From the NCBI GenBank assembly GCA_964057225.1, contig OZ059894.1, positions 3,472,001 through 3,536,000 on the forward strand: DNA of 64,000 nucleotides. The letters run 5' to 3'. Below the pieces are notes generated by a model, which made no database searches, was not told where the DNA came from, and saw only the letters and a program-made list of their open reading frames with translations. Source of the stretch: Auanema rhodensis (Eukaryota; Animalia; Nematoda). Of the stretch, positions 1 through 23,700 are shown piece by piece (position 1 is the first letter of the stretch; each line of letters opens with the position of its first letter). The translations under genes and the position numbers were made by a program.

Positions 1-135
1 ACGTAAAAATTAGTTTTTTAGGGTGAAAATCGAGGATATAGGTGTGAACTTATATCAGTTGATATCTTGTTGCATTTTTAAGCTACCGCAAATCTGATAA
101 CACAGATCGACGCAGCTTAAAAATCCGCATCGAAT
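1..135 (+). repeat. Diverged partial monomer of 351-bp satellite SatB (array probably continues left of the window)
   Basis: Matches the SatB segment gggtgaaaatcgaggatata...atctgataacacagatcgacgcagcttaaaaatccgcatcgaat seen from 11776 onward, in the same orientation, with several substitutions. Confidence 0.95.
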
Positions 136-339
136 AAGGAAAACCTTGACAAGGAAAACCTTGAGAACTCCACGAGTATTTTCATAGATGAGTCGAGAGA
201 TACGCTTTACTCCACCACGACGAGCAAGACGACGGATAGCAGGCTTGTTTATACCTTGGATGTTATCACGGAGAACCTTACGATGGCGTTTGGCTTCTCC
301 CTTTCCAAGACCTTTTCCTCCTTTAACACGTCCAGACAT
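136..339 (-). pseudogene. H4: Truncated, degenerate histone H4
   Basis: 339..151 encodes H4 residues 1-62 with five substitutions at near-invariant sites (G4V, G14E, T30N, G48R, E53N). A 15-bp duplication follows (KVFL-VKVFL), then the sequence runs into SatB. The C-terminal 40 aa and the stem-loop are missing. Confidence 0.93.
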
Positions 340-381
340 GCTGATCGAGCTGTGTGTTGAATAGTAACCCTAGCATTTACC

Positions 382-406
382 TTATATACTAGTGCTGTAG
401 AGGTCA
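382..406 (-). promoter_or_regulatory. H4 promoter: TGACCTC-N7-CTAGTATATAA (TATA box plus upstream element)
   Basis: TATATAA lies ~43 bp upstream of the H4 ATG. The same bipartite motif with the same spacing recurs at 2227-2251. TTTGCGCG lies immediately upstream. Confidence 0.65.
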
Positions 407-775
407 CCGCGCAAAAACCCATTGTAATCGCCACCAAGCATATTGGCGCTTAATTTTGCTGCTCAATTCTAAAAATGTATTTTTAAATTTCATATAAACG
501 ATAAGAATAACATAAACAACTGTTTATTTGCGAACAAACGTAGAATAGAAGCATGTGAGGCATTAGATATGATAACTGTTGTTGTTATCAACATGAAAGC
601 ATAATTAATGAAATTCATAAAAAAAAATGAAGATGGATATGGAATATCAAAGACAGGGATTCTCCTTTACATAACAACAAAACATATCATATCAATTAAC
701 ATTACATAGCAAAAAAAGACAAGACAGACACAGTATTATATTATAAATCATTATGAATACATCAAATTTAAGTGT

Positions 776-791
776 GGCCCTGAAGAGGGCC
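776..791 (-). other. Histone mRNA 3' stem-loop (SLBP-binding element) of the H3 gene
   Basis: The minus strand reads AACCCAAC-GGCCCT-CTTC-AGGGCC-ACA, a 6-bp stem with a 4-nt loop, 26 nt after the H3 stop codon. Confidence 0.95.
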
Positions 792-817
792 GTTGGGTTA
801 TGTAACGTTTCAAGTGC

Positions 818-1321
<504 letters not shown>

Positions 1322-1704
1322 TCACTATTTTGGTATTTTGACTATAAATATATTAAATCGGATCATAGCTACATAAATAAAGTGTTACAGTAATAAGGAC
1401 AAAAACTTAGTAACTGTGCGTTGATTGGAATGTAATAGTAAATTGTATTAAAACATTCACTGTTCCATTTAAAAAATAATTGTCTTCACGTATTATATAG
1501 TAAAATTTTTAATTAGAATACACTTGACCAATTATGGATATTTCAACATCATTATAGCAAACATCTTAAAATTAACTAAATGCACCACTTGACAAGAGTT
1601 ACTCATCTCATAAGAATTACATCAATATTAAGAAGCTCAAAAAAACTAACTATAACAACAACCGATCAACTGCCATCTGTTTCAAAAATGAAATATCAAT
1701 CAAA

Positions 1705-2052
1705 ATTATTGAACACGCCAGTTTGTTATTATATTTATTTTTATATTATTTTATATTATATTTGTTTATAAATATTAGGTCCTGCATGGAAATTCCTTTT
1801 GTTCACTAAAAAACACGGTACGCAATTCGGGCAACACATTGTCTGGAATAATGTTGAAGCTCCAGTTAATTTATGCAATTAAGTTATTTTGTTAAAAGTT
1901 AGCTTTACTTTCGTAATTCATTATTGAACACGCCAGTTTGTTATTATATTTATTTTTATATTATTTTATATTATATTTGTTTATAAGTATTAGGTCCTGC
2001 ATGGAAATTCCTTTTGTTCACTAAAAAACACGGTACGCAATTCGGGCAACAC
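1705..2052 (+). repeat. 133-bp direct repeat (1705-1837 and 1920-2052)
   Basis: attattgaacacgccag...gcaattcgggcaacac occurs twice with an offset of 215 bp. One mismatch was seen. Confidence 0.93.
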
Positions 2053-2067
2053 TTTTTTTTTTTTTTT
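2053..2067. repeat. Poly(T)15 tract at the end of the second direct-repeat copy
   Basis: Fifteen consecutive T, followed by further T-rich sequence to ~2118. Confidence 0.9.
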
Positions 2068-2226
2068 ACTTTTTTATTTGGATGTGACATTACTTCCTTT
2101 TTTTTATTTGTGATTTTTCGATCATCTATATTTTAGTTATTATTATTTAAATATACACAATGTATATTTAAAACACTTTTGTAGCATCTTGTTATTATGA
2201 TCATGCTCAAATGAGTTGTTGCAGGT

Positions 2227-2251
2227 TGACCTCCCTGGTCCTAGTATATAA
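2227..2251 (+). promoter_or_regulatory. Histone-promoter-like element at the head of SatA
   Basis: TGACCTC-cctggtc-CTAGTATATAA. All 18 fixed positions and the 7-nt spacing match the H4 upstream element. Confidence 0.6.
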
Positions 2252-2356
2252 TGAAGAAAATTCTTCACTTCATCTCCTGGTTTGCGCGCTAACTAACATA
2301 CAGGTCAGCAAAGGGAGTGGCACAATAACAGTTCATTCGTCAGCGTAAGAATAACC

Positions 2357-2428
2357 ATGCCACCCAAGACATCCGCCAAGGGAGCTGAAGAAACGGAGAG
2401 AAGAAGAAGAGAAATTCCTGAAAGTAAG
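2357..2428 (+). pseudogene. First (most divergent) H2B-like 5' fragment of SatA
   Basis: ATG CCA CCC AAG ACA TCC GCC AAG GGA GCT = MPPKTSAKGA. It is preceded by TTCATTCG (histone cap-site-like YCATTCR) at ~2332. No histone-fold sequence follows. Confidence 0.65.
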
Positions 2429-3250
2429 TTTTTAAGTTTTTAATGTTTAAATAATTCAAATAATTTCGAGTTGAATCAAATGTGTTTATCTATATTTTAG
2501 TTATTATTATTTAAATAAACACAATTCTTATAGTAAAGCTTCTAACCAGAGTTGGGAGAATGGGGGCGTGGTTTGCGCGCTAACTAACATATAGGTCAGC
2601 AAAGGAAGTTGTACAATAACAGTTGATTCGTCAGCGTAGGAATAACCATGCCACCCAAGCCATCCGCCAAGGGAGCTGAAGACAAAGGAGAGAAGAAGAA
2701 GAGAAATTCCTGAAAGTAAGTTTTTAATGTTTAAATAATTCAAATAATTTCAAGTTGAATCAAATGTCTTTATCTATATTTTAGTTATTATTATTTAAAT
2801 ATACACAATTCTTATAGTAAAGCTTCTAACCAGAGTTGGGAGAATGGGGGCGTGGTTTGCGTGCTAACTAACATATAGGTCAGCAAAGGGAATTGTACAA
2901 TAACAGTTGATACGTCAGCGTAGGAATAACCATGCCATCCAAGCCATCCGCCAAGGGAGCTGAAAAAGAGAAATTCCAGAAAGTAAGTTTATATCAATAG
3001 TTTTCATGTAAAACAGCCTTTTATGAGGAAATTTAAAGTTTTTAATGTTTAAATAATTCAAATAATTTCAAGTTGAATCAAATGTCTTTATCTATATTTT
3101 AGTATATTATTATTTAAATATACACAATTCTTATAGTAAAGCTTCTAACCAGAGTTGGGAGAATGGGGGCGTGGTTTTCGCACTAACTAACATATAGGTC
3201 AGCAAAGGGAGTTGTACAATAACAGTTGATTCGTCAGCGTAGGAATAACC

Positions 3251-3316
3251 ATGCCACCCAAGCCATCCGCCAAGGGAGCTGAAGAGAAAGGAGAGAAGAA
3301 GAAGAGAAATTCCTGA
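3251..3316 (+). pseudogene. Representative H2B N-terminal-tail mini-ORF of a 292-bp SatA monomer (MPPKPSAKGAEEKGEKKKRNS*)
   Basis: The first 10 aa match the nematode H2B N-terminus (M/A)PPKPSAKGA as recalled. KGEKKKRNS(R)K resembles the basic patch before ESY. The stop TGA is AGA (Arg) in the 319-bp monomers. Confidence 0.65.
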
Positions 3317-6300
3317 AAGTAAGTTTTTAAGTTTTTAATGTTTAAATAATTCAAATAATTTCAAGTTGAATCAAATGTCTGTATCTATATTTTAGTTATT
3401 ATTATTTAAATATACACAATTCTTATAGTAAAGCTTCTAACCAGAGTTGGGAGAATGGAAGCGTGGTTTGCGTGCTAACTAACATATAGGTCAGCAAAGG
3501 GAGTTGTACAATAACAGTTGATACGTCAGCGTAGGAATAACCATGCCACCCAAGCCATCCGCCAAGGGAGCTGAAGAAGAGAAATTCCAGAAAGTAAGTT
3601 TATATCAATAGTTTTCATGTAAAACAGCCTTTTATGAGGAAATTTAAAGTTTTTAATTTTTAAATAATTCAAATAATTTCAAGTTGAATCAAATGTCTTT
3701 ATGTATATTTTAGTATATTATTATTCAAGTATACACAATTCTTATAGTAAAGCTTCTAACCAGAGTTGGGAGAATGGGGGCGTGGTTTGCGCGCTAACTA
3801 TCATATAGGTCAGCAAAGGGAGTTGTACAATAACAGTTGATTCGTCAGCGTAGGAATAACCATGCCACCCAAGCCATCCGCCAAGGGAGCTGAAGAAGAG
3901 AAATTCCAGAAAGTAAGTTTATATCAATAGTTTTCATGTAAAACAGCCTTTTATGAGGAAATTTAAAGTTTTTAATGTTTAAATAATTCAAATAATTTCA
4001 AGTTGAATCAAATGTCTTTATCTATATTTTAGTATATTATTATTTAAATATACACAATTCTTATAGTAAAGCTTCTAACCAGAGTTGGGAGAATGGGGGC
4101 GTGGTTTTCGCACTAACTAACATATAGGTCAGCAAAGGGAGTTGTACAATAACAGTTGATTCGTCAGCGTAGGAATAACCATGCCACCCAAGCCATCCGC
4201 CAAGGGAGCTGAAGAGAAAGGAGAGAAGAAGAAGAGAAATTCCTGAAAGTAAGTTTTTAAGTTTTTAATGTTTAAATAATTCAAATAATTTCAAGTTGAA
4301 TCAAATGTCTGTATCTATATTTTAGTTATTATTATTTAAATATACACAATTCTTATAGTAAAGCTTCTAACCAGAGTTGGGAGAATGGAAGCGTGGTTTG
4401 CGTGCTAACTAACATATAGGTCAGCAAAGGGAGTTGTACAATAACAGTTGATACGTCAGCGTAGGAATAACCATGCCACCCAAGCCATCCGCCAAGGGAG
4501 CTGAAGAAGAGAAATTCCAGAAAGTAAGTTTATATCAATAGTTTTCATGTAAAACAGCCTTTTATGAGGAAATTTAAAGTTTTTAATTTTTAAATAATTC
4601 AAATAATTTCAAGTTGAATCAAATGTCTTTATGTATATTTTAGTACATTATTATTCAAGTATACACAATTCTTATAGTAAAGCTTCTAACCAGAGTTGGG
4701 AGAATGGGGGCGTGGTTTGCGCGCTAACTAACGTATAGGTCAGCAAAGGGAGTTGTACAATAACAGTTGATTCGTCAGCGTAGGAATAACCATGCCACCC
4801 AAGCCATCCGCCAAGGGAGCTGAAGAGAAAGGAGAGAAGAAGAAGAGAAATTTCTGAAAGTGAGTTTTCAAGTTTTTAATGTTTAAATAATTCAAATAAT
4901 TTCAAGTTGAATCAAATGTCTTTATCTATATTTTAGTTATTATTATTCAAATATACACAATTCTTATAGTAAAGCTTCTAACCAGAGTTGGGAGAATGGG
5001 GGCGTGGTTTGCGCGCTAACTATCATATAGGTCAGCAAAGGGAGTTGTACAATAACAGTTGATTCGTCAGCGTAGGAATAACCATGCCACCCAAGCCATC
5101 CGCCAAGGGAGCTGAAAAAGAGAAATTCCAGAAAGTAAGTTTATATCAATAGTTTTCATGTAAAACAGCCTTTTATGAGGAAATTTAAAGTTTTTAATGT
5201 TTAAATAATTCAAATAATTTCAAGTTGAATCAAATGTCTTTATCTATATTTTAGTATATTATTATTTAAATATACACAATTCTTATAGTAAAGCTTCTAA
5301 CCAGAGTTGGGAGAATGGGGGCGTGGTTTTCGCACTAACTAACATATAGGTCAGCAAAGGGAGTTGTACAATAACAGTTGATTCGTCAGCGTAGGAATAA
5401 CCATGCCACCCAAGCCATCCGCCAAGGGAGCTGAAGAGAAAGGAGAGAAGAAGAAGAGAAATTCCTGAAAGTAAGTTTTTAAGTTTTTAATGTTTAAATA
5501 ATTCAAATAATTTCAAGTTGAATCAAATGTCTGTATCTATATTTTAGTTATTATTATTTAAATATACACAATTCTTATAGTAAAGCTTCTAACCAGAGTT
5601 GGGAGAATGGAAGCGTGGTTTGCGTGCTAACTAACATATAGGTCAGCAAAGGGAGTTGTACAATAACAGTTGATACGTCAGCGTAGGAATAACCATGCCA
5701 CCCAAGCCATCCGCCAAGGGAGCTGAAGAAGAGAAATTCCAGAAAGTAAGTTTATATCAATAGTTTTCATGTAAAACAGCCTTTTATGAGGAAATTTAAA
5801 GTTTTTAATTTTTAAATAATTCAAATAATTTCAAGTTGAATCAAATGTCTTTATGTATATTTTAGTATATTATTATTCAAGTATACACAATTCTTATAGT
5901 AAAGCTTCTAACCAGAGTTGGGAGAATGGGGGCGTGGTTTGCGCGCTAACTATCATATAGGTCAGCAAAGGGAGTTGTACAATAACAGTTGATTCGTCAG
6001 CGTAGGAATAACCATGCCACCCAAGCCATCCGCCAAGGGAGCTGAAGAAGAGAAATTCCAGAAAGTAAGTTTATATCAATAGTTTTCATGTAAAACAGCC
6101 TTTTATGAGGAAATTTAAAGTTTTTAATGTTTAAATAATTCAAATAATTTCAAGTTGAATCAAATGTCTTTATCTATATTTTAGTATATTATTATTTAAA
6201 TATACACAATTCTTATAGTAAAGCTTCTAACCAGAGTTGGGAGAATGGGGGCGTGGTTTTCGCACTAACTAACATATAGGTCAGCAAAGGGAGTTGTACA

Positions 6301-9300
6301 ATAACAGTTGATTCGTCAGCGTAGGAATAACCATGCCACCCAAGCCATCCGCCAAGGGAGCTGAAGAGAAAGGAGAGAAGAAGAAGAGAAATTCCTGAAA
6401 GTAAGTTTTTAAGTTTTTAATGTTTAAATAATTCAAATAATTTCAAGTTGAATCAAATGTCTGTATCTATATTTTAGTTATTATTATTTAAATATACACA
6501 ATTCTTATAGTAAAGCTTCTAACCAGAGTTGGGAGAATGGAAGCGTGGTTTGCGTGCTAACTAACATATAGGTCAGCAAAGGGAGTTGTACAATAACAGT
6601 TGATACGTCAGCGTAGGAATAACCATGCCACCCAAGCCATCCGCCAAGGGAGCTGAAGAAGAGAAATTCCAGAAAGTAAGTTTATATCAATAGTTTTCAT
6701 GTAAAACAGCCTTTTATGAGGAAATTTAAAGTTTTTAATTTTTAAATAATTCAAATAATTTCAAGTTGAATCAAATGTCTTTATGTATATTTTAGTATAT
6801 TATTATTCAAGTATACACAATTCTTATAGTAAAGCTTCTAACCAGAGTTGGGAGAATGGGGGCGTGGTTTGCGCGCTAACTAACGTATAGGTCAGCAAAG
6901 GGAGTTGTACAATAACAGTTGATTCGTCAGCGTAGGAATAACCATGCCACCCAAGCCATCCGCCAAGGGAGCTGAAGAGAAAGGAGAGAAGAAGAAGAGA
7001 AATTCCTGAAAGTGAGTTTTCAAGTTTTTAATGTTTAAATAATTCAAATAATTTCAAGTTGAATCAAATGTCTTTATCTATATTTTAGTTATTATTATTC
7101 AAATATACACAATTCTTATAGTAAAGCTTCTAACCAGAGTTGGGAGAATGGGGGCGTGGTTTGCGCGCTAACTAACGTATAGGTCAGCAAAGGGAGTTGT
7201 ACAATAACAGTTGATTCGTCAGCGTAGGAATAACCATGCCACCCAAGCCATCCGCCAAGGGAGCTGAAGAGAAAGGAGAGAAGAAGAAGAGAAATTCCTG
7301 AAAGTGAGTTTTCAAGTTTTTAATGTTTAAATAATTCAAATAATTTCAAGTTGAATCAAATGTCTTTATCTATATTTTAGTATATTATTATTTAAATATA
7401 CACAATTCTTATAGTAAAGCTTCTAACCAGAGTTGGGAGAATGGGGGCGTGGTTTTCGCACTAACTAACATATAGGTCAGCAAAGGGAGTTGTACAATAA
7501 CAGTTGATTCGTCAGCGTAGGAATAACCATGCCACCCAAGCCATCCGCCAAGGGAGCTGAAGAGAAAGGAGAGAAGAAGAAGAGAAATTCCTGAAAGTAA
7601 GTTTTTAAGTTTTTAATGTTTAAATAATTCAAATAATTTCAAGTTGAATCAAATGTCTGTATCTATATTTTAGTTATTATTATTTAAATATACACAATTC
7701 TTATAGTAAAGCTTCTAACCAGAGTTGGGAGAATGGAAGCGTGGTTTGCGTGCTAACTAACATATAGGTCAGCAAAGGGAGTTGTACAATAACAGTTGAT
7801 ACGTCAGCGTAGGAATAACCATGCCACCCAAGCCATCCGCCAAGGGAGCTGAAGAAGAGAAATTCCAGAAAGTAAGTATATATCAATAGTTTTCATGTAA
7901 AACAGCCTTTTATGAGGAAATTTAAAGTTTTTAATTTTTAAATAATTCAAATAATTTCAAGTTGAATCAAATGTCTTTATGTATATTTTAGTATATTATT
8001 ATTCAAGTATACACAATTCTTATAGTAAAGCTTCTAACCAGAGTTGGGAGAATGGGGGCGTGGTTTGCGCGCTAACTATCATATAGGTCAGCAAAGGGAG
8101 TTGTACAATAACAGTTGATTCGTCAGCGTAGGAATAACCATGCCACCCAAGCCATCCGCCAAGGGAGCTGAAGAAGAGAAATTCCAGAAAGTAAGTTTAT
8201 ATCAATAGTTTTCATGTAAAACAGCCTTTTATGAGGAAATTTAAAGTTTTTAATGTTTAAATAATTCAAATAATTTCAAGTTGAATCAAATGTCTTTATC
8301 TATATTTTAGTATATTATTATTTAAATATACACAATTCTTATAGTAAAGCTTCTAACCAGAGTTGGGAGAATGGGGGCGTGGTTTTCGCACTAACTAACA
8401 TATAGGTCAGCAAAGGGAGTTGTACAATAACAGTTGATTCGTCAGCGTAGGAATAACCATGCCACCCAAGCCATCCGCCAAGGGAGCTGAAGAGAAAGGA
8501 GAGAAGAAGAAGAGAAATTCCTGAAAGTAAGTTTTTAAGTTTTTAATGTTTAAATAATTCAAATAATTTCAAGTTGAATCAAATGTCTGTATCTATATTT
8601 TAGTTATTATTATTTAAATATACACAATTCTTATAGTAAAGCTTCTAACCAGAGTTGGGAGAATGGAAGCGTGGTTTGCGTGCTAACTAACATATAGGTC
8701 AGCAAAGGGAGTTGTACAATAACAGTTGATACGTCAGCGTAGGAATAACCATGCCACCCAAGCCATCCGCCAAGGGAGCTGAAGAAGAGAAATTCCAGAA
8801 AGTAAGTTTATATCAATAGTTTTCATGTAAAACAGCCTTTTATGAGGAAATTTAAAGTTTTTAATGTTTAAATAATTCAAATAATTTCAAGTTGAATCAA
8901 ATGTCTTTATCTATATTTTAGTATATTATTATTTAAATATACACAATTCTTATAGTAAAGCTTCTAACCAGAGTTGGGAGAATGGGGGCGTGGTTTTCGC
9001 ACTAACTAACATATAGGTCAGCAAAGGGAGTTGTACAATAACAGTTGATTCGTCAGCGTAGGAATAACCATGCCACCCAAGCCATCCGCCAAGGGAGCTG
9101 AAGAGAAAGGAGAGAAGAAGAAGAGAAATTCCTGAAAGTAAGTTTTTAAGTTTTTAATGTTTAAATAATTCAAATAATTTCAAGTTGAATCAAATGTCTG
9201 TATCTATATTTTAGTTATTATTATTTAAATATACACAATTCTTATAGTAAAGCTTCTAACCAGAGTTGGGAGAATGGAAGCGTGGTTTGCGTGCTAACTA

Positions 9301-11665
9301 ACATATAGGTCAGCAAAGGGAGTTGTACAATAACAGTTGATACGTCAGCGTAGGAATAACCATGCCACCCAAGCCATCCGCCAAGGGAGCTGAAGAAGAG
9401 AAATTCCAGAAAGTAAGTTTATATCAATAGTTTTCATGTAAAACAGCCTTTTATGAGGAAATTTAAAGTTTTTAATTTTTAAATAATTCAAATAATTTCA
9501 AGTTGAATCAAATGTCTTTATGTATATTTTAGTATATTATTATTCAAGTATACACAATTCTTATAGTAAAGCTTCTAACCAGAGTTGGGAGAATGGGGGC
9601 GTGGTTTGCGCGCTAACTAACGTATAGGTCAGCAAAGGGAGTTGTACAATAACAGTTGATTCGTCAGCGTAGGAATAACCATGCCACCCAAGCCATCCGC
9701 CAAGGGAGCTGAAGAGAAAGGAGAGAAGAAGAAGAGAAATTCCTGAAAGTGAGTTTTCAAGTTTTTAATGTTTAAATAATTCAAATAATTTCAAGTTGAA
9801 TCAAATGTCTTTATCTATATTTTAGTTATTATTATTCAAATATACACAATTCTTATAGTAAAGCTTCTAACCAGAGTTGGGAGAATGGGGGCGTGGTTTG
9901 CGCGCTAACTATCATTTAGGTCAGCAAAGGGAGTTGTACAATAACAGTTGATTCGTCAGCGTAGGAATAACCATGCCACCCAAGCCATCCGCCAAGGGAG
10001 CTGAAGAGAAAGGAGAGAAGAAGAAGAGAAATTCCTGAAAGTGAGTTTTCAAGTTTTTAATGTTTAAATAATTCAAATAATTTCAAGTTGAATCAAATGT
10101 CTTTATCTATATTTTAGTTATTATTATTCAAATATACACAATTCTTATAGTAAAGCTTCTAACCAGAGTTGGGAGAATGGGGGCGTGGTTTGCGCGCTAA
10201 CTATCATATAGGTCAGCAAAGGGAGTTGTACAATAACAGTTGATTCGTCAGCGTAGGAATAACCATGCCACCCAAGCCATCCGCCAAGGGAGCTGAAGAA
10301 GAGAAATTCCAGAAAGTAAGTTTATATCAATAGTTTTCATGTAAAACAGCCTTTTATGAGGAAATTTAAAGTTTTTAATGTTTAAATAATTCAAATAATT
10401 TCAAGTTGAATCAAATGTCTTTATCTATATTTTAGTATATTATTATTTAAATATACACAATTCTTATAGTAAAGCTTCTAACCAGAGTTGGGAGAATGGG
10501 GGCGTGGTTTTCGCACTAACTAACATATAGGTCAGCAAAGGGAGTTGTACAATAACAGTTGATTCGTCAGCGTAGGAATAACCATGCCACCCAAGCCATC
10601 CGCCAAGGGAGCTGAAGAGAAAGGAGAGAAGAAGAAGAGAAATTCCTGAAAGTAAGTTTTTAAGTTTTTAATGTTTAAATAATTCAAATAATTTCAAGTT
10701 GAATCAAATGTCTGTATCTATATTTTAGTTATTATTATTTAAATATACACAATTCTTATAGTAAAGCTTCTAACCAGAGTTGGGAGAATGGAAGCGTGGT
10801 TTGCGTGCTAACTAACATATAGGTCAGCAAAGGGAGTTGTACAATAACAGTTGATTCGTCAGCGTAGGAATAACCATGCCACCCAAGCCATCCGCCAAGG
10901 GAGCTGAAGAAGAGAAATTCCAGAAAGTAAGTTTATATCAATAGTTTTCATGTAAAACAGCCTTTTATGAGGAAATTTAAAGTTTTTAACTTTTAAATAA
11001 TTCAAATAATTTCAAGTTGAATCAAATGTCTTTATGTATATTTTAGTATATTATTATTCAAGTATACACAATTCTTATAGTAAAGCTTCTAACCAGAGTT
11101 GGGAGAATGGGGGCGTGGTTTGCGCGCTAACTAACGTATAGGTCAGCAAAGGGAGTTGTACAATAACAGTTGATTCGTCAGCGTAGGAATAACCATGCCA
11201 CCCAAGCCATCCGCCAAGGGAGCTGAAGAGAAAGGAGAGAAGAAGAAGAGAAATTCCTGAAAGTGAGTTTTCAAGTTTTTAATGTTTAAATAATTCAAAT
11301 AATTTCAAGTTGAATCAAATGTCTTTATCTATATTTTAGTTATTATTATTCAAATATACACAATTCTTATAGTAAAGCTTCTAACCAGAGTTGGGAGAAT
11401 GGGGGCGTGGTTTGCGCGCTAACTATCATATAGGTCAGCAAAGGGAGTTGTACAATAACAGTTGATTCGTCAGCGTAGGAATAACCATGCCACCCAAGCC
11501 ATCCGCCAAGGGAGCTGAAGAAAAGGAGAGAAGAAGAAGAGAAATTCCTGAAAGTAAGTTTTTAAGTTTTTAATGTTTAAATAATTCAAATAATTTCAAG
11601 TTGATTCAAATGTCTTTATCTATATCTTAGTTATTATTATTTAAATATACATAATTTTTGTAGTA

Positions 11666-11768
11666 AAGCTTCTAACCAGAGTTGGGAGAATGGGTAAGGA
11701 TAAGCTTCTAACCAGAGTTGGGAGAATGGGTAAGGATAAGCTTCTAACCAGAGTTGGGAGAATGGGGG
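11666..11768 (+). repeat. Three tandem copies of a 36-bp SatA sub-fragment at the SatA/SatB border
   Basis: aagcttctaaccagagttgggagaatggg starts at 11666, 11702 and 11738, joined by the linker taaggat. Confidence 0.95.
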
Positions 11769-11775
11769 AGTGGTT

Positions 11776-14700
11776 TCGAATGCACTATACCACATTAAGA
11801 AACGCTCAATACAAGACTTAGTTATGATCGTTTGAAAAATGATGCATTAGTGTATGTTGAGTTTCCATGTACACTCAACATTGCTTCCAAAAACATTTTG
11901 ACAAAAATTTTTTCGAAAAATTTCGAAATAATTTAGCAAAAAGTAGATGTTTTTAGATTCCTTTTTTCAAGGCAAAGACGATGGACAATGTTATTCAACG
12001 AAAAAATTAATTCTTCAGGGTGAAAATCGAGGATATAAGTGTGAACTTATATCAGTTGATATCTCGGTGCATTTTTAAGCTAGCGCAAATCTGATAACAC
12101 AGATCGACGCAGCTTGAAAATCTGCATCGAATGCACTATACTACATTGAGAAACGCTTAATACAAAAATTAGTTATGATCGTTTGAAAAATGATGCATTA
12201 GTGTATGTTGAGTTTCCATGTACACTCAACATTGCTTCCAAAAACATTTTGACAAAAATTTTTTCGAAAAATTTCAGAATAATTTAGCGAAAAGTAGATG
12301 TTTTTAGATTCCTTTTTTCAAGGCAAAGACGATGGACAATGTTATTCAACGAAAAAATTAATTCTTCAGGGTGAAAATCGAGGATATAAGTGTGAACTTA
12401 TATCAGTTGATATCTCGGTGCATTTTTAAGCTAGCGCAAATCTGATAACACAGATCGACGCAGCTTGAAAATCCGCATCGAATGCACTATACTACATTGA
12501 AAAACGCTTAATACAAAAATTAGTTATGATCGTTTGAAAAATGATGCATTAGTGTATGTTGAGTTTCCATGTACACTCAACATTGCTTCCAAAAACATTT
12601 TGACAAAAATTTTTTCGAAAAATTTCGAAATAATTTAGCAAAAAGTAGATGTTTTTAGATTCCTTTTTTCAAGACAAAGACGATGGACAATGTTATTCAA
12701 CGAAAAAATTAATTCTTCAGGGTGAAAATCGAGGATATAAGTGTGAACTTATATCAGTTGATATCTCGGTGCATTTTTAAGCTAGCGCAAATCTGATAAC
12801 ACAGATCGACGCAGCTTGAAAATCTGCATCGAATGCACTATACTACATTGAGAAACGCTTAATACAAAAATTAGTTATGATCGTTTGAAAAATGATGCAT
12901 TAGTGTATGTTGAGTTTCCATGTACACTCAACATTGCTTCCAAAAACATTTTGACAAAAATTTTTTCGAAAAATTTCAGAATAATTTAGCGAAAAGTAGA
13001 TGTTTTTAGATTCCTTTTTTCAAGGCAAAGACGATGGACAATGTTATTCAACGAAAAAATTAATTCTTCAGGGTGAAAATCGAGGATATAAGTGTGAACT
13101 TATATCAGTTGATATCTCGGTGCATTTTTAAGCTAGCGCAAATCTGATAACACAGATCGACGCAGCTTAAAAATCCGCATCGAATGCACTATACTACATT
13201 GAAAAACGCTTAATACAAAAATTAGTTATGATCGTTTGAAAAATGATGCATTAGTGTATGTTGAGTTTCCATGTACACTCAACATTGCTTCCAAAAACAT
13301 TTTGACAAAAATTTTTTCGAAAAATTTCAAAATAATTTAGCGAAAGTAGATGTTTTTAGATTCCTTTTTTCAAGGCAAAGACGATGGACAATGTTATTCA
13401 ACGAAAAAATTAATTCTTCAGGGTGAAAATCGAGGATATAAGTGTGAACTTATATCAGTTGATATCTCGGTGCATTTTTAAGCTAGCGCAAATCTGATAA
13501 CACAGATCGACGCAGCTTAAAAATCCGCATCGAATGCACTATACTACATTGAAAAACGCTTAATACAAAAATTAGTTATGATCGTTTGAAAAATGATGCA
13601 TTAGTGTATGTTGAGTTTCCATGTACACTCAACATTGCTTCCAAAAACATTTTGACAAAAATTTTTTCGAAAAATTTCAAAATAATTTAGCGAAAAGTAG
13701 ATGTTTTTAGATTCCTTTTTTCAAGGCAAAGACGATGGACAATGTTATTCAACGAAAAAATTAATTCTTCAGGGTGAAAATCGAGGATATAAGTGTGAAC
13801 TTATATCAGTTGATATCTCGGTGCATTTTTAAGCTAGCGCAAATCTGATAACACAGATCGACGCAGCTTGAAAATCCGCATCGAATGCACTATACTACAT
13901 TGAAAAACGCTTAATACAAAAATTAGTTATGATCGTTTGAAAAATAATGCATTAGTGTATGTTGAGTTTCCATGTACACTCAACATTGCTTCCAAAAACA
14001 TTTTGACAAAAATTTTTTCGAAAAATTTCAAAATAATTTAGCGAAAAGTAGATGTTTTTAGATTCCTTTTTTCAAGGCAAAGACGATGGACAATGTTATT
14101 CAACAAAAAAATTAATTCTTCAGGGTGAAAATCAAGGATATAAGTGTGAACTTATATCAGTTGAAATCTCGGTGCATTTTTAAGCTAGCGCAAATCTGAT
14201 AACACAGATCGACGCAGGTTGAAAATCCGCATCGAATGCACTTTACTACATTGAAAAACGCTCAATACAAAAATTAGTTATGATCGTTTGAAAAATGATG
14301 CATTAGTGTATGTTGAGTTTCCATGTACACTCAACATTGCTTCCAAAAACATTTTGACAAAAATTTTTTCGAAAAATTTCAAAATAATTTAGCGAAAAGT
14401 AGATGTTTTTAGATTCCTTTTTTCAAGGCAAAGACGATGGACAATGTTATTCAACAAAAAAATTAATTCTTCAGGGTGAAAATCAAGGATATAAGTGTGA
14501 ACTTATATCAGTTGAAATCTCGGTGCATTTTTAAGCTAGCGCAAATCTGATAACACAGATCGACGCAGCTTAAAAATCCGCATCGAATGCACTATACTAC
14601 ATTAAAAAACGCTTAATACAAAAATTAGTTATGATCGTTTGAAAAATGATGCATTAGTGTATGTTGAGTTTCCATGTACACTCAACATTGCTTCCAAAAA

Positions 14701-17700
14701 CATTTTTACAAAAATTTTTTCGAAAAATTTCAAAATAATTTAGCGAAAAGTAGATGTTTTTAGATTCCTTTTTTCAAGGCAAAGACGATGGACAATGTTA
14801 TTCAACGAAAAAATTAATTCTTCAGGGTGAAAATCGAGGATATAAGTGTGAACTTATATCAGTTGATATCTCGGTGCATTTTTAAGCTAGCGCAAATCTG
14901 ATAACACAGATCGACGCAGCTTAAAAATCCGCATCGAATGCACTATACTACATTGAAAAACGCTTAATACAAAAATTAGTTATGATCGTTTGAAAAATGA
15001 TGCATTAGTGTATGTTGAGTTTCCATGTACACTCAACATTGCTTCCAAAAACATTTTTACAAAAATTTTCCCGGAAAATTTCAAAATAATTTCACGAAAA
15101 GTAGATGTTTTTAGATTCCTTTTTTCAAGGCGAAGACGATGGACAATGTTATTCAGCGAAAAAATTAACTCTTCAGGGTGAAAATCGAGGATATAAGTGT
15201 GAACCGATATCAGTTGATATCTCGGTGCATTCTAAAGCTAGCGCAATTTTGATAACACAGATCGACGCAGCTCAAAAATCCGCATTGAATGCACTATACT
15301 TCATTGAGAAACGCTCAATACAAAAATTAGTTATGATCGTTTGAAAAATGATGCATTAGTGTATATTGAGTTTCCATGTACACTCAACATTGCTTCCAAA
15401 AACATTTTGACAAAAATTTTTTCGAAAAATTTCAAAATAGTTTAGCAAAAAGTAGATGTTTTTAGATTCCTTTTTTCAAGGCAAAAACGATGGACAATGT
15501 TATTCAACGAAAAAAGTAAATCTTCAGGGTGAAAATCGAGGATATAAGTGTGAACATATATCAGTTGATATCTCGGTGCATTTTTAAGCTAGCGCAAATC
15601 TGATAACACAGATCGACGCAGCTCAAAAATCTACATCGAATGCACTATACTTCATTAAGAAATGCTCAATACAAAAATTAGTTATGATCGTTTGGAAAGT
15701 GATGCATTACTGTATGTTGAGTTTCAATGTACACTCAACATTGCTTTCAAAAACATTTTGACAAAAATTTTCCCGAAAAATTTCGAAATAATTTCACGAA
15801 AAGTAGATGTTTTTAGATTTCTTTTTTCGAGGCGAAGATGATGGACAATGTTATTCAGCGAATGACAAAAATTTTTTCGAAAAATTTCAAAATAATTTAG
15901 CAAAAAGTAGATGTTTTTAGATTCCCTTTTTCAAGGCAAAGACGATGGACGATGTTATTCAACAAAAAAATTAATTTTTCAGGGTGAAAATCGAGGATAT
16001 AAGTGTGAACTTATATCAGTTGATATCTCGGTGCATTTTTAAGCTAGCGCAAATCTGATAACACAGATCGATGCAGCTTAAAAATCCGCATCGAATGCAC
16101 TATACTACATTGAGAAACGCTCAATACAAAAATTAGTTATGATCGTTTGAAAAATGATGCATTAGTGTATGTTGAGTTTCCAAGGCAAAGACGATGGACA
16201 ATGTTATTCAACGAAAAAATTAATTCTTCAGGGTGAAAATCGAGGATATAAGTGTGAACTTATATCAGTTGATATCTCGGTGCATTTTTAAGCTAGCGCA
16301 AATCTGATAACACAGATCGACGCAGCTTAAAAATCCGCATCGAATGCACTATACTACATTGAGAAACGCTTAATACAAAAATTAGTTATGATCGTTTGAA
16401 AAATGATGCATTAGTGTATGTTGAGTTTCCATGTACACTCAACATTGCTTCCAAAAACATTTTGACAAAAATTTTTTCGAAAAATTTCAAAATAATTTAG
16501 CAAAAAGTAGATGTTTTCAGATTTTTTTTTTCAAGGCAAAGACGATGGACAATGTTATTCAACGAAAAAATTAATTCTTCAGGGTGAAAATCGAGGATAT
16601 AAGTGTGAACTTATATCAGTTGATATCTCGGTGCATTTTTAAGCTAGCGCAAATCTGATAACACAGATCGACGCAGCTTAAAAATCCGCATCGAATGCAC
16701 TATACTACATTGAGAAACGCTCAATACAAAAATTAGTTATGATCGTTTGAAAAATGATGCATTAGTGTATGTTGAGTTTCCATGTACACTCAACATTGCT
16801 TCCAAAAACATTTTGACAAAAATTTTTTCGAAAAATTTCAAAATAATTTAGCAAAAAGTAGATGTTTTTAGATTCCTTTTTTCAAGGCAAAGACGATGGA
16901 CATTGTTATTCAACGAAAAAATTAATTCTTCAGGGTGAAAATCGAGGATATAAGTGTGAACTTATATCAGTTGATATCTCGGTGCATTTTTAAGCTAGCG
17001 CAAATCTGATAAAACAGATCGACGCAGCTTAAAAATCCGCATCGAATGCACTATACTACATTGAGAAACGCTCAATACAAAAATTAGTTATGATCGTTTG
17101 AAAAATGATGCATTAGTGTATGTTGAGTTTCCATGTACACTCAACATTGCTTCCAAAAACATTTTGACAAAAATTTTTTCGAAAAATTTCAAAATAATTT
17201 AGCAAAAAGTAGATGTTTTTAGATTCCTTTTTTCAAGGCAAAGACGATGGACATTGTTATTCAACGAAAAAATTAATTCTTCAGGGTGAAAATCGAGGAT
17301 ATAAGTGTGAACATATATCAGTTGATATCTCGGTGCATTTTTAAGCTAGCGCAAATCTGATAACACAGATCGATGCAGCTTAAAAATCCGCATAGAATGC
17401 ACTATACTACATTGAGAAACGCTTAATACAAAAATTAGTTATGATCGTTTGAAAAATGATGCATTAGTGTATGTTGAGTTTCCATGTACACTCAACATTG
17501 CTTCCAAAAACATTTTGACAAAAATTTTTTCGAAAAATTTCAAAATAATTTAGCAAAAAGTAGATGTTTTTAGATTCCTTTTTTCAAGGCAAAGACGATG
17601 GACATTGTTATTCAACGAAAAAATTAATTCTTCAGGGTGAAAATCGAGGATATAAGTGTGAACTTATATCAGTTGATATCTCGGTGCATTTTTAAGCTAG

Positions 17701-20700
17701 CGCAAATCTGATAACACAGACCGACGCAGCTTAAAAATCCGCATCGAATGCACTATACTACATTGAGAAACGCTCAATACAAAAATTAGTTATGATCGTT
17801 TGAAAAATGATGCATTAGTGTATGTTGAGTTTCCATGTACAATCAACATTGCTTCCAAAAACATTTTGACAAAAATTTTTTTGAAAAATTTCAAAATAAT
17901 TTAGCAAAAAGTAGATGTTTTTAGATTCCTTTTTTCAAGGCAAAGACGATGGACGATGTTATTCAACGAAAAAATTAATTCTTCAGGGTCAAAATCGAGG
18001 ATATAAGTGTGAACTTATATCAGTTGATATCTCGGTGCATTTTTAAGCTAGCGCAAATCTGATAACACAGATCGACGCAGCTTAAAAATCCGCATCGAAT
18101 GCACTATACTACATTGAGAAACGCTTAATACAAAAATTAGTTATGATCGTTTGAAAAATGATGCATTAGTGTATGTTGAGTTTCCATGTACACTCAACAT
18201 TGCTTCCAAAAACATTTTGACAAAAATTTTTTCGAAAAATTTCAAAATAATTTAGCAAAAAGTAGATGTTTTTAGATTCCTTTTTTCAAGGCAAAGACGA
18301 TGGACGATGTTATTCAACGAAAAAATTAATTCTTCAGGGTCAAAATCGAGGATATAAGTGTGAACTTATATCAGTTGATATCTCGGTGCATTTTTCAGCT
18401 AGCGCAAATCTGATAACACAGATCGACGCAGCTTAAAAATCCGCATCGAATGCACTATACTACATTGAGAAACGCTCAATACAAAAATTAGTTATGATCG
18501 TTTGAAAAATGATGCATTAGTGTATGTTGAGTTTCCATGTACACTCAACATTGCTTCCAAAAACATTTTGACAAAAATTTTTTCGAAAAATTTCAAAATA
18601 ATTTAGCAAAAAGTAGATGTTTTCAGATTTTTTTTTTTAAGGCAAAGACGATGGACAATGTTATTCAACGAAAAAATTAATTCTTCAGGGTGAAAATCGA
18701 GGATATAAGTGTGAACTTATATCAGTTGATATCTCGGTGCATTTTTAAGCTAGCGCAAATCTGATAACACAGATCGACGCAGCTTAAAAATCCGCATCGA
18801 ATGCACTATACTACATTGAGAAACGCTCAATACAAAAATTAGTTATGATCGTTTGAAAAATGATGCATTAGTGTATGTTGAGTTTCCATGTACACTCAAC
18901 ATTGCTTCCAAAAACATTTTGACAAAAATTTTTTCGAAAAATTTCAAAATAATTTAGCAAAAAGTAGATGTTTTCAGATTTTTTTTTTTAAGGCAAAGAC
19001 GATGGACAATGTTATTCAACGAAAAAATTAATTCTTCAGGGTGAAAATCGAGGATATAAGTGTGAACTTATATCAGTTGATATCTCGGTGCATTTTTAAG
19101 CTAGCGCAAATCTGATAACACAGATCGACGCAGCTTAAAAATCCGCATCGAATGCACTATACTACATTGAGAAACGCTCAATACAAAAATTAGTTATGAT
19201 CGTTTGAAAAATGATGCATTAGTGTATGTTGAGTTTCCATGTACACTCAACATTGCTTCCAAAAACATTTTGACAAAAATTTTTTCGAAAAATTTCAAAA
19301 TAATTTAGCAAAAAGTAGATGTTTTTAGATTCCTTTTTTCAAGGCAAAGACGATGGACATTGTTATTCAACGAAAAAATTAATTCTTCAGGGTGAAAATC
19401 GAGGATATAAGTGTGAACATATATCAGTTGATATCTCGGTGCATTTTTAAGCTAGCGCAAATCTGATAACACAGATCGATGCAGCTTAAAAATCCGCATA
19501 GAATGCACTATACTACATTGAGAAACGCTTAATACAAAAATTAGTTATGATCGTTTGAAAAATGATGCATTAGTGTATGTTGAGTTTCCATGTACACTCA
19601 ACATTGCTTCCAAAAACATTTTGACAAAAATTTTTTCGAAAAATTTCAAAATAATTTAGCAAAAAGTAGATGTTTTTAGATTCCTTTTTTCAAGGCAAAG
19701 ACGATGGACATTGTTATTCAACGAAAAAATTAATTCTTCAGGGTGAAAATCGAGGATATAAGTGTGAACTTATATCAGTTGATATCTCGGTGCATTTTTA
19801 AGCTAGCGCAAATCTGATAACACAGACCGACGCAGCTTAAAAATCCGCATCGAATGCACTATACTACATTGAGAAACGCTCAATACAAAAATTAGTTATG
19901 ATCGTTTGAAAAATGATGCATTAGTGTATGTTGAGTTTCCATGTACAATCAACATTGCTTCCAAAAACATTTTGACAAAAATTTTTTTGAAAAATTTCAA
20001 AATAATTTAGCAAAAAGTAGATGTTTTTAGATTCCTTTTTTCAAGGCAAAGACGATGGACGATGTTATTCAACGAAAAAATTAATTCTTCAGGGTCAAAA
20101 TCGAGGATATAAGTGTGAACTTATATCAGTTGATATCTCGGTGCATTTTTCAGCTAGCGCAAATCTGATAACACAGATCGACGCAGCTTAAAAATCCGCA
20201 TCGAATGCACTATACTACATTGAGAAACGCTCAATACAAAAATTAGTTATGATCGTTTGAAAAATGATGCATTAGTGTATGTTGAGTTTCCATGTACACT
20301 CAACATTGCTTCCAAAAACATTTTGACAAAAATTTTTTCGAAAAATTTCAAAATAATTTAGCAAAAAGTAGATGTTTTCAGATTTTTTTTTTTAAGGCAA
20401 AGACGATGGACAATGTTATTCAACGAAAAAATTAATTCTTCAGGGTGAAAATCGAGGATATAAGTGTGAACTTATATCAGTTGATATCTCGGTGCATTTT
20501 TAAGCTAGCGCAAATCTGATAACACAGATCGACGCAGCTTAAAAATCCGCATCGAATGCACTATACTACATTGAGAAACGCTCAATACAAAAATTAGTTA
20601 TGATCGTTTGAAAAATGATGCATTAGTGTATGTTGAGTTTCCATGTACACTCAACATTGCTTCCAAAAACATTTTGACAAAAATTTTTTCGAAAAATTTC

Positions 20701-23700
20701 AAAATAATTTAGCAAAAAGTAGATGTTTTCAGATTTTTTTTTTTAAGGCAAAGACGATGGACAATGTTATTCAACGAAAAAATTAATTCTTCAGGGTGAA
20801 AATCGAGGATATAAGTGTGAACTTATATCAGTTGATATCTCGGTGCATTTTTAAGCTAGCGCAAATCTGATAACACAGATCGACGCAGCTTAAAAATCCG
20901 CATCGAATGCACTATACTACATTGAGAAACGCTCAATACAAAAATTAGTTATGATCGTTTGAAAAATGATGCATTAGTGTATGTTGAGTTTCCATGTACA
21001 CTCAACATTGCTTCCAAAAACATTTTGACAAAAATTTTTTCGAAAAATTTCAAAATAATTTAGCAAAAAGTAGATGTTTTTAGATTCCTTTTTTCAAGGC
21101 AAAGACGATGGACGATGTTATTCAACGAAAAAATTAATTCTTCAGGGTCAAAATCGAGGATATAAGTGTGAACTTATATCAGTTGATATCTCGGTGCATT
21201 TTTCAGCTAGCGCAAATCTGATAACACAGATCGACGCAGCTTAAAAATCCGCATCGAATGCACTATACTACATTGAGAAACGCTCAATACAAAAATTAGT
21301 TATGATCGTTTGAAAAATGATGCATTAGTGTATGTTGAGTTTCCATGTACACTCAACATTGCTTCCAAAAACATTTTGACAAAAATTTTTTCGAAAAATT
21401 TCAAAATAATTTAGCAAAAAGTAGATGTTTTCAGATTTTTTTTTTTAAGGCAAAGACGATGGACAATGTTATTCAACGAAAAAATTAATTCTTCAGGGTG
21501 AAAATCGAGGATATAAGTGTGAACTTATATCAGTTGATATCTCGGTGCATTTTTAAGCTAGCGCAAATCTGATAACACAGATCGATGCAGCTTAAAAATC
21601 CGCATCGAATGCACTATACTACATTGAGAAACGCTTAATACAAAAATTAGTTATGATCGTTTGAAAAATGATGCATTAGTGTATGTTGAGTTTCCATGTA
21701 CACTCAACATTGCTTCCAAAAACATTTTGACAAAAATTTTTTCGAAAAATTTCAAAATAATTTAGCAAAAAGTAGATGTTTTTAGATTCCTTTTTTCAAG
21801 GCAAAGACGATGGACATTGTTATTCAACGAAAAAATTAATTCTTCAGGGTGAAAATCGAGGATATAAGTGTGAACTTATATCAGTTGATATCTCGGTGCA
21901 TTTTTAAGCTAGCGCAAATCTGATAACACAGATCGATGCAGCTTAAAAATCCGCATCGAATGCACTATACTACATTGAGAAACGCTTAATACAAAAATTA
22001 GTTATGATCGTTTGAAAAATGATGCATTAGTGTATGTTGAGTTTCCATGTACACTCAACATTGCTTCCAAAAACATTTTGACAAAAATTTTTTCGAAAAA
22101 TTTCAAAATAATTTAGCAAAAAGTAGATGTTTTTAGATTCCTTTTTTCAAGGCAAAGACGATGGACATTGTTATTCAACGAAAAAATTAATTCTTCAGGG
22201 TGAAAATCGAGGATATAAGTGTGAACATATATCAGTTGATATCTCGGTGCATTTTTAAGCTAGCGCAAATCTGATAACACAGATCGATGCAGCTTAAAAA
22301 TCCGCATCGAATGCACTATACTACATTGAGAAACGCTTAATACAAAAATTAGTTATGATCGTTTGAAAAATGATGCATTAGTGTATGTTGAGTTTCCATG
22401 TACACTCAACATTGCTTCCAAAAACATTTTGACAAAAATTTTTTCGAAAAATTTCAAAATAATTTAGCAAAAAGTAGATGTTTTTAGATTCCTTTTTTCA
22501 AGGCAAAGACGATGGACGATGTTATTCAACGAAAAAATTAATTCTTCAGGGTCAAAATCGAGGATATAAGTGTGAACTTATATCAGTTGATATCTCGGTG
22601 CATTTTTAAGCTAGCGCAAATCTGATAACAAAGATCGACGCAGCTTAAAAATCCGCATCGAATGCACTATACTACATTGAGAAACGCTCAATACAAAAAT
22701 TAGTTATGATCGTTTGAAAAATGATGCATTAGTGTATGTTGAGTTTCCATGTACACTCAACATTGCTTCCAAAAACATTTTGACAAAAATTTGTTCGAAA
22801 AATTTCAAAATAATTTAGCAAAAAGTAGATGTTTTTAGATTCCTTTTTTCAAGGCAAAGACGATGGACATTGTTATTCAACGAAAAAATTAATTCTTCAG
22901 GGTGAAAATCGAGGATATAAGTGTGAACATATATCAGTTGATATCTCGGTGCATTTTTAAGCTAGCGCAAATCTGATAACACAGATCGACGCAGCTTAAA
23001 AATCCGCATCGAATGCACTATACTACATTGAGAAACGCTTAATACAAAAATTAGTTATGATCGTTTGAAAAATGATGCATTAGTGTATGTTGAGTTTCCA
23101 TGTACACTCAACATTGCTTCCAAAAACATTTTGACAAAAATTTGTTCGAAAAATTTCAAAATAATTTAGCAAAAAGTAGATGTTTTTAGATTCCTTTTTT
23201 CAAGGCAAAGACGATGGACGATGTTATTCAACGAAAAAATTAATTCTTCAGGGTCAAAATCGAGGATATAAGTGTGAACTTATATCAGTTGATATCTCGG
23301 TGCATTTTTAAGCTAGCGCAAATCTGATAACACAGATCGACGCAGCTTAAAAATCCGCATCGAATGCACTATACTACATTGAGAAACGCTCAATACAAAA
23401 ATTAGTTATGATCGTTTGAAAAATGATGCATTAGTGTATGTTGAGTTTCCATGTACACTCAACATTGCTTCCAAAAACATTTTGACAAAAATTTGTTCGA
23501 AAAATTTCAAAATAATTTAGCAAAAAGTAGATGTTTTTAGATTCCTTTTTTCAAGGCAAAGACGATGGACGATGTTATTCAACGAAAAAATTAATTCTTC
23601 AGGGTCAAAATCGAGGATATAAGTGTGAACTTATATCAGTTGATATCTCGGTGCATTTTTAAGCTAGCGCAAATCTGATAACACAGATCGACGCAGCTTA

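Follow-up and report, generated by a model that had tools for sequence, protein, structure and literature searches.

A satellite derived from the 5' end of a histone H2B gene, and evidence that its AT-rich spacer is spliced out, at one locus of Auanema rhodensis

The window analysed here is a stretch of 64,000 nucleotides from the nematode Auanema rhodensis (C1:3,472,001-3,536,000 of the 181-Mb assembly; contig OZ059894.1). It contains SatA, an H2B-type tandem repeat next to relics of histone genes, along with a 351-bp repeat (SatB) and a 176-bp repeat (SatC). SatA fills 2278-11775 (9.5 kb), where a unit census counts 31 head-to-tail units, one truncated and 30 full. Tandem Repeats Finder reports 31.0 copies at 2278-11694 with periods of 284, 292 and 319 and 88% matches, followed by a 36-bp tail repeated 2.8 times that runs up to 11766. 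Both results agree with an earlier note on this DNA, which had put about 31 copies at 2278-11775. Full units are mainly 284, 292 or 319 bp long, and lengths of 293 and 291 bp also occur. Most are paired as 292+319 dimers of 611 bp, the longest array of the locus also has a higher order of 1222 bp, and the 284-bp unit, which is nearest to the parent, is confined to the array starts. SatA has the properties of a satellite: the monomers run head to tail over many kilobases (seven arrays at the locus span 1.3 to 14 kb), and there is higher-order structure and homogenisation with older variants at the edges. The array begins with TGGTTTGCG and finishes with ...GTGGTT, its ends being in register (TGGTT(T) on both sides), and the left junction is crossed by a DNA-run contig at 2199-2318. 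The features of the array are as follows, where UTR stands for untranslated region.

2278..2533, + strand: first SatA unit, truncated; starts at H2B -79 (TGGTTTGCGCGC) and lacks -125 to -80; 5' splice site GT at 2424-2425
2534..11663, + strand: 30 full SatA monomers, mostly 292+319 dimers (repeat finder and census)
3137..3318, + strand: example exon of a 292-type unit, 182 nt, with GC box, TTTGCGCGC-type box, TATA-like box and 5'UTR (alignment to H2B -125 to codon 33 with a 27-bp deletion; RNA contig joints)
3251..3316, + strand: residual H2B frame MPPKPSAKGAEEKGEKKKRNS, then a stop, AGA having changed to TGA (sequence reading and alignment)
3319..3428, + strand: AT-rich 110-nt spacer, apparently removed as a GT..AG intron (GTAAGT...TTCTTATAG; RNA contig joints)
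11664..11775, + strand: array tail, two 36-bp mini-repeats (the first 30 nt of the exon plus GTAAGGAT), then a last promoter piece ending ...GGGGGAGTGGTT, joined straight to SatB

Each unit carries, in this order, GGGGCGTGG, TTTGCGCGC, CATATAGG, TTGATTCG (TTCATTCG in the first unit) and AACCATG, followed by the codons MPPKPSAKGA and a purine-rich (E/D)KGEKKKRNS tract. The intact histone genes of the genome lie on contig C3 in two tandem quartet arrays with the order H4>H2B>H2A>H3 on a single strand. One array is at 5.256-5.343 Mb with a period of about 3545 bp and the other at 18.512-18.545 Mb with a period of 3688 bp. About 180 bp of each SatA unit correspond to H2B from about -125 to codon 33, minus 27 bp deleted in frame, and are 93-95% identical to the intact H2B genes at 5.26-5.34 Mb. 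From about -125 to +34, a span that takes in the promoter, the 5'UTR and the N-terminal codons, the identity is 93-95%; over codons 23-33 it is 88%. In blastn searches window 2525-2682 matches 2774..2618 of the canonical unit L041 (H2B -123 to +34) at 93%, collinear with promoter and coding sequence, and window 2687-2719 matches codons ~23-33 at 88%. Within the 5.26-Mb array there are 12 sites that match the 284-bp monomer with 94-95% identity across 120 nt, and the similarity continues through the adjacent 38 nt upstream. Every one of these sites directly adjoins the PF00125 histone fold of an intact 123-aa H2B gene. The SatA exon shares a perfect 46-nt stretch (end of the 5'UTR, ATG and first 11 codons) with H2B genes of the 5.26-Mb type, whereas identity to SatA drops to about 84% for H2B genes of the 18.5-Mb type.

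The homology stops at ...CCTGAAAG/TAAGTT (the slash marks the breakpoint), at codon 33, and SatA has no PF00125 match. A histone 3' stem-loop is also missing from SatA; an Rfam scan of 1-12500 finds only that of the neighbouring H3 gene. In the 292-type units a parental AGA has become TGA, as a pairwise alignment with intact H2B shows, and the open reading frame (ORF) is 21 codons long with TGA ending the tract. The monomer is therefore supported by these alignments as a probable fusion of the 5' module of an H2B gene to about 100-154 bp of AT-rich DNA. SatB and SatC were also considered as histone derivatives and were ruled out, having no similarity to histone units.

Most of what the earlier note had said about the monomer holds. 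The motifs that it named are all present in gene order on direct reading, followed by MPPKPSAKGA and a basic tract. It had written this tract as KGEKKKRNS(R)K, which is correct as to its presence, but in 292-type units the tract ends in the TGA stop after 21 codons. Its view of the monomer as an H2B promoter, a 5'UTR and an internally deleted tail exon is borne out by the collinear segments at 93% and 88% and by the 27-bp in-frame deletion, and its statement that the histone fold is lost by the missing PF00125 match. The note had named a genome comparison as the result that could overturn this view; the comparison instead gave a contiguous alignment of monomer and H2B over the distal promoter, the 5'UTR and the first codons. 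The note had also described the GC box as mutated in some copies, and both GC-rich promoter motifs are in fact intact in only 64 of the 133 units of the locus. Finally, it had seen one of the boxes upstream of H4 as well. The word TTTGCGCG has 15 occurrences in the window where 1.6 would be expected, and one of them, at 408-415 on the minus strand, lies ~70 nt upstream of the ATG of the H4 fragment.

The variation between units is unevenly placed. None of the 133 units differs in the 5'UTR, the ATG or the first 11 codons. The first 145 nt of the exon contain eight variable sites, five of them inside a 19-nt block of promoter boxes. The 292-type and 319-type consensus sequences are ~90% identical in exon and intron parts alike, with indels allowed for.

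The canonical quartets resemble SatA in promoter boxes, 5'UTR and first codons (93-95% identity) and in their head-to-tail tandem organisation. However, the canonical unit is 3.5-3.7 kb long and has four intact genes with stem-loops, whereas the SatA unit is 0.28-0.32 kb long and has neither an intact gene nor a stem-loop. A profile search detected 21 H2B and 21 H3 genes across the two canonical clusters. Their promoters contain a composite GGGCG(G/T)G...GCGCGC module at about -85 to -60, and canonical H2A promoters contain the GGGCGG half only. In L041 and L042, which cover both canonical cluster types, the module upstream of H2B and H3 reads GGGCGG or GGGCGTGG and then, after a few bases at most, GCGCGC. 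The shared module is a candidate site for a histone-specific factor in this species.

Contigs from sequencing runs suggest that SatA is transcribed and that the AT-rich spacer is spliced out like an intron. The probable RNA runs X11, X12 and X15 each have one 212-nt SatA contig with a GT..AG joint. The joint in X15 runs from 3318 to 3429 and skips 110 nt; X11 and X12 have equivalent joints, and the other placements are 3318 to 4678 and 3318 to 2534. When the X12 contig is rebuilt from its coordinates, the first 30 nt equal the last 30 nt, which gives a closed k=31 path with a period of 182. This 182-nt sequence is exactly the H2B-derived part (TAAAGCTTC...CCTGAAA) and 22 units of the locus carry it without change. 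The 214-kb region has no match to the 60-nt sequence across two joined exons, the 36-nt core of this joint has no match genome-wide with up to 2 mismatches, and no such joint is among the joints listed for DNA run X1. The three runs cover H3 but neither the intergenic flank nor SatB, the depth of which is in the millions in DNA run X1. Since the GT..AG joint is found in three probable RNA runs of one study and is absent from the genome, the H2B-derived part appears to act as an exon. The earlier note had offered the array as a possible source of RNA, and this proposal gains support from the spliced contigs.

The splice sites are present throughout the locus. All 133 units keep a GT (AAA/GTAAGT or GTGAGT, the slash marking the splice site) and an AG (TTATAG/ or TTTGTAG/). 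The donor AAA/GTAAGT arises at the breakpoint where H2B codon 33 meets the AT-rich DNA, and the acceptor TTCTTATAG/ is found at the upstream limit of the H2B homology, a position at which the parent reads TTCTTACAG. The breakpoint that truncated H2B thus created a 5' splice site, and therefore every monomer became an exon-intron unit. The X15 contig has 319-type sequence in the 5' part of the exon and a 292-type 3' end; therefore, both unit types appear to feed the RNA. The spliced repeats contain no long sense ORF, and long ORFs are found in antisense only. The RNA would be either a chain of repeated exons or a circle, and the cyclic 182-nt k-mer path fits both equally well.

SatA and its surroundings belong to a larger repeated block, the parts of which are listed here.

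150..339, - strand: H4 relic that keeps codons 1 to ~63, several of them replaced; identity 89-92% with canonical H4 and 99.5-100% between copies of the locus; fused to SatB via a 15-bp duplication at 136-164
752..796, - strand: histone 3' stem-loop of the H3 gene (Rfam RF00032, 29.7 bits, E=3.6e-5)
818..1228, - strand: intact H3 gene, 1050 bp from the SatA array
1749..2156, no strand: non-histone flank of about 400 bp, common to all seven SatA-bearing units
2124..2161, + strand: 38-bp piece equal to the 3' part of the monomer's AT-rich intron (100% identity)
2157..2274, + strand: H4-promoter relic of the C3 5.26-Mb type, facing into the array (81% to L041 3559..3445; TATATAA at 2245-2251)
11776..32508, + strand: SatB, the 351-bp satellite that hosts the block of histone relics and SatA (repeat finder; genome search)
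C1:3414277-3414579, 3426465-3426767, 3429857-3430159, 3433586-3433888 and 3440127-3440429: cut H3 copies, a second, deleted version of the block

The block consists of two histone-cluster relics head to head with the non-histone flank between them. Window 150-1748 comprises the 5' part of H4, a spacer, H3 and the region upstream of H3. It aligns collinearly, at 89-94%, with units of the 18.5-Mb type, and H2B is missing from it. On the other side, the H4-promoter relic extends past its TATA box as far as 'cttcacttcatc', in the presumed H4 start region, after which the sequence is that of H2B from -79 onwards. Parts of the flank (1765-1924 and 2063-2119) have one partial relative, at C1:14,149,999-14,150,243 (93-96%). 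At the left end the 15-bp duplication between H4 and SatB is made of AAGGAAAACCTTGAC x1.9. The contigs of X11 match the H3 variant of the locus at 896-1075 with 0 mismatches, and X12 has a second H3 variant with 19 mismatches. Since contigs of a probable RNA run match it without mismatch, the locus variant is apparently expressed, which suggests that the H3 copies stranded amid the satellites are expressed.

In the feature map C1:3.342-3.556 Mb contains about 14 mega-units of [SatB array, H4 fragment, H3, flank, SatA array], and the repeat spans roughly 160 kb. SatA is present in seven mega-units with 3 to 45 full units each, 133 in total. The SatA arrays mostly start with a truncated unit, 284, 319 and 292, and mostly end with 292, 291, 36 and 36; they differ only in the count of internal 292+319 dimers. 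The H3 genes and flanks are 99.5-100% identical between mega-units; therefore, the amplification is recent. Five mega-units have neither flank nor SatA; their H3 stops after 303 bp and is joined straight to SatB (L044, L050, L045). A genome-wide search finds no SatA outside its single 105-kb locus, and SatB and SatC are found genome-wide on several contigs. SatA is thus a young satellite limited to one locus.

These findings bear on where the array came from. An intact H3 gene had been reported about 1.1 kb away, which is accurate. However, the same note had called the adjacent histone cluster the parent of the array, and this does not hold: the neighbouring H3/H4 relic is of the 18.5-Mb type without H2B, and the closest H2B genes are on another contig. 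Its further suggestion of a gene-to-satellite birth caught in place stands as far as the satellite is H2B-derived; it is not a single birth in place, and the array belongs to a block amplified segmentally, in which there are seven such arrays. On the sides of this block SatB starts with TCGAATGC and ends with ...GCATCGAAT, in register and with TCGAAT on both sides. Judged from these junction sequences, the in-register ends and the 15-bp duplication suggest insertion at a single site and a microhomology-mediated duplication.

Further observations concern the other satellites. Long SatB arrays are found on at least 3 large contigs (C1 at 1.85, 20.0 and 22.9 Mb; C4 at 19.2 and 21.4 Mb; C6 at 1.26-1.66 and 19.2-19.8 Mb). 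SatC (176 bp, with sub-periods of 153, 176 and 352 bp) fills window 32526-64000, and its orientation flips near 34,130-34,219. It reaches at least C1:3.65 Mb and is present on C6 too. DNA runs of two other organisms share 22-24% of words with window 1-6000.

The best explanation overall, which is considered probable, is a sequence of duplications followed by accidental transcription. A rearranged histone piece of the 5.26-Mb type, with an H4 promoter and then an H2B 5' end, would have been duplicated in tandem. SatA may have started as a tandem duplication bounded by microhomology, possibly of a histone repeat collapsed by deletion, and unequal exchange would then have grown the duplication into 292+319 dimers. 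The block of relics and SatA, placed at a single phase-preserving SatB site, would have been co-amplified with SatB by unequal exchange into about 14 mega-units. The contigs show the next step: the junction of H2B codon 33 with AT-rich DNA made a consensus 5' splice site, with the TTATAG/ acceptor at the upstream edge of the H2B part of the next unit. The AT-rich parts appear to be removed as GT-AG introns, with the exons (182 nt in the 292-type and a predicted 165 nt in the 319-type) joined head to tail. Transcription of the + strand may start from H2B-type promoters inside the units, from the H4-type promoter at the left edge (presumed start just before 2278), or from both. Histone-style termination would be impossible; since SatA has no histone 3' signal, the polymerase would read on and the spliceosome would remove each AT-rich segment.

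Several points weigh against this explanation. The RNA status of X11, X12 and X15 is a guess, and all three are from one study. Their contigs are Logan contigs at k=31, from which starts, ends, strand and abundance are not readable, so neither the promoter in use nor the transcript length can be taken from them. A k=31 graph also cannot phase donor and acceptor variants, and a linear chain and a circle look the same in it. No contig lies over the first SatA unit, so initiation at the H4-type promoter is unsupported by contigs. Local alignments of the AT-rich part with the two canonical histone units, run with shuffled controls, gave no significant collinear match; the one similarity was marginal, itself AT-rich and on the wrong strand (z about 4). 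Neutrality of the RNA is a default position, and the invariant 5'UTR, ATG and 11 codons could fit youth, homogenisation or constraint.

The RNA has most likely not evolved for a function and is a neutral by-product of a repeat that carries promoters; the promoter boxes are probably decaying in a young, unconstrained repeat, with transcription and splicing as by-products. It has to be weighed against a role in regulating histone genes, by spliced RNA that feeds RNA-dependent RNA polymerase (RdRP)/Argonaute small RNAs against the 5' ends of H2B mRNA or by titration of factors on the promoter copies. The earlier note had raised both a sink for histone-gene transcription factors and a source of small RNA matching H2B mRNA 5' ends. 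The array is apparently transcribed, and its exon carries the perfect 46-nt H2B stretch in 133 of 133 units. Titration would draw on the composite module shared with canonical H2B and H3 promoters, as 64 SatA units with an intact module face 21 H2B and 21 H3 canonical genes. However, the variation between units centres on the promoter boxes (five of eight sites in the 19-nt block), which looks like decay and not maintenance, and copy number varies widely (5- to 48-fold) among near-identical mega-units, as under unconstrained unequal exchange. A regulatory role is therefore doubtful. It is still less likely that SatA is a self-contained promoter-exon-intron satellite in which each unit can start transcription, and whose spliced tandem-exon or circular RNAs with the 46-nt H2B copy, or ~64 intact modules, feed back on histone expression via small RNAs or titration; this would make it a newborn satellite recruited to histone dosage control.

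The other alternatives concern the form of the RNA and the origin of the repeat. The 182-nt periodic RNA might be mainly circular, a single SatA exon being back-spliced, and not a linear chain of many units. All three RNA contigs are exactly 182+30 nt long and self-closing, one is placed as 'goes back 785', and identical flanking repeats are a classic setting for back-splicing. Nevertheless, a tandem chain of identical exons yields the same cyclic k-mer graph, and the backward placement can be put down to which of the repeated monomers matched best. The introns on either side are repeats in direct, not inverted, orientation and so do not bring the splice sites together by pairing, and the mixture of a 319-type 5' part with a 292-type 3' end in the X15 contig fits splicing between adjacent units, although phase is not resolvable at k=31. 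A predominantly circular RNA is thus possible but unlikely. It is very unlikely that the splice is an artefact of DNA contamination, of a strain with an intron-less DNA repeat or of misassembly. The runs are RNA by guess and repeat contigs can be chimeric, but these runs lack SatB and the intergenic flank while covering H3. In three runs the skipped segment is bounded by GT..AG with consensus flanks, neither the assembly nor the joints listed for DNA run X1 include the joint, and the array's left junction is confirmed by a contig from a DNA run. Capture and spread of the H2B piece by a transposable element (e.g. Helitron-like), with the array as an internal tandem repeat of the element, is equally improbable. 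Gene-fragment capture followed by tandem amplification in mobile elements is known in other animals, satellite-like repeats borne by Helentrons reportedly offer a case for comparison, and the 6-bp TCGAAT that flanks the block resembles a target-site duplication. On the other hand, SatA is limited to a single 105-kb locus, outside the locus the flank has a single partial relative, 1-2300 shows neither a transposase-like ORF nor a terminal repeat, and the adjoining pieces are histone-cluster relics in canonical order (H4 promoter, then H2B).

Gene-derived satellites are known for 5S ribosomal DNA (rDNA), tRNA genes and a few protein genes. Full-text literature searches, including a 2025 review of satellite DNA, found no satellite derived from a histone gene. 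Stellate and Suppressor of Stellate (Su(Ste)) of Drosophila melanogaster are tandem repeats derived from a protein gene, with a promoter and introns in each unit, and are transcribed and spliced. SatA is like them in its protein-gene origin, its promoter and intron per unit and its apparent transcription and splicing. However, Stellate keeps a full ORF and Su(Ste) is a proven source of PIWI-interacting RNA (piRNA), whereas SatA keeps 21 codons or fewer. In newts the histone clusters sit in satellite 1, and transcription reads through from histone promoters on lampbrush loops. Histone promoters beside a satellite, with failed histone 3' end formation leading to satellite-containing transcripts, are a likeness to SatA; but the newt satellite is unrelated in sequence to histone genes, whereas the SatA monomer is itself a histone promoter and 5' end. 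The frog satellite PcP190 is derived from 5S rDNA, joins a conserved gene-homologous part to a variable part and has evidence of transcription (PMC11675491). SatA shares with it a monomer that joins a part homologous to a multicopy gene to a variable part, and evidence of transcription. The parent of PcP190 is an RNA gene transcribed by RNA polymerase III and the satellite is old and has a wide distribution among frog families, whereas SatA is derived from the promoter and 5' coding end of a protein gene transcribed by RNA polymerase II (Pol II), is found at one locus and apparently has its variable part spliced out as an intron. The distinguishing feature of SatA among gene-derived satellites is that each monomer appears to behave as one exon plus one intron, built from the Pol II promoter and first codons of a gene.

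SatA is a rare, well-preserved example of a gene fragment becoming a satellite. The stages that are kept include intact parents, a parent-like edge unit, two diverged monomer types in dimers and seven arrays of 5 to 48 units in near-identical blocks. A repeat can thus gain processed transcripts by accident, and the locus is a tractable system for satellite birth, the onset of satellite transcription and the question whether promoter-bearing repeats disturb their parent genes.

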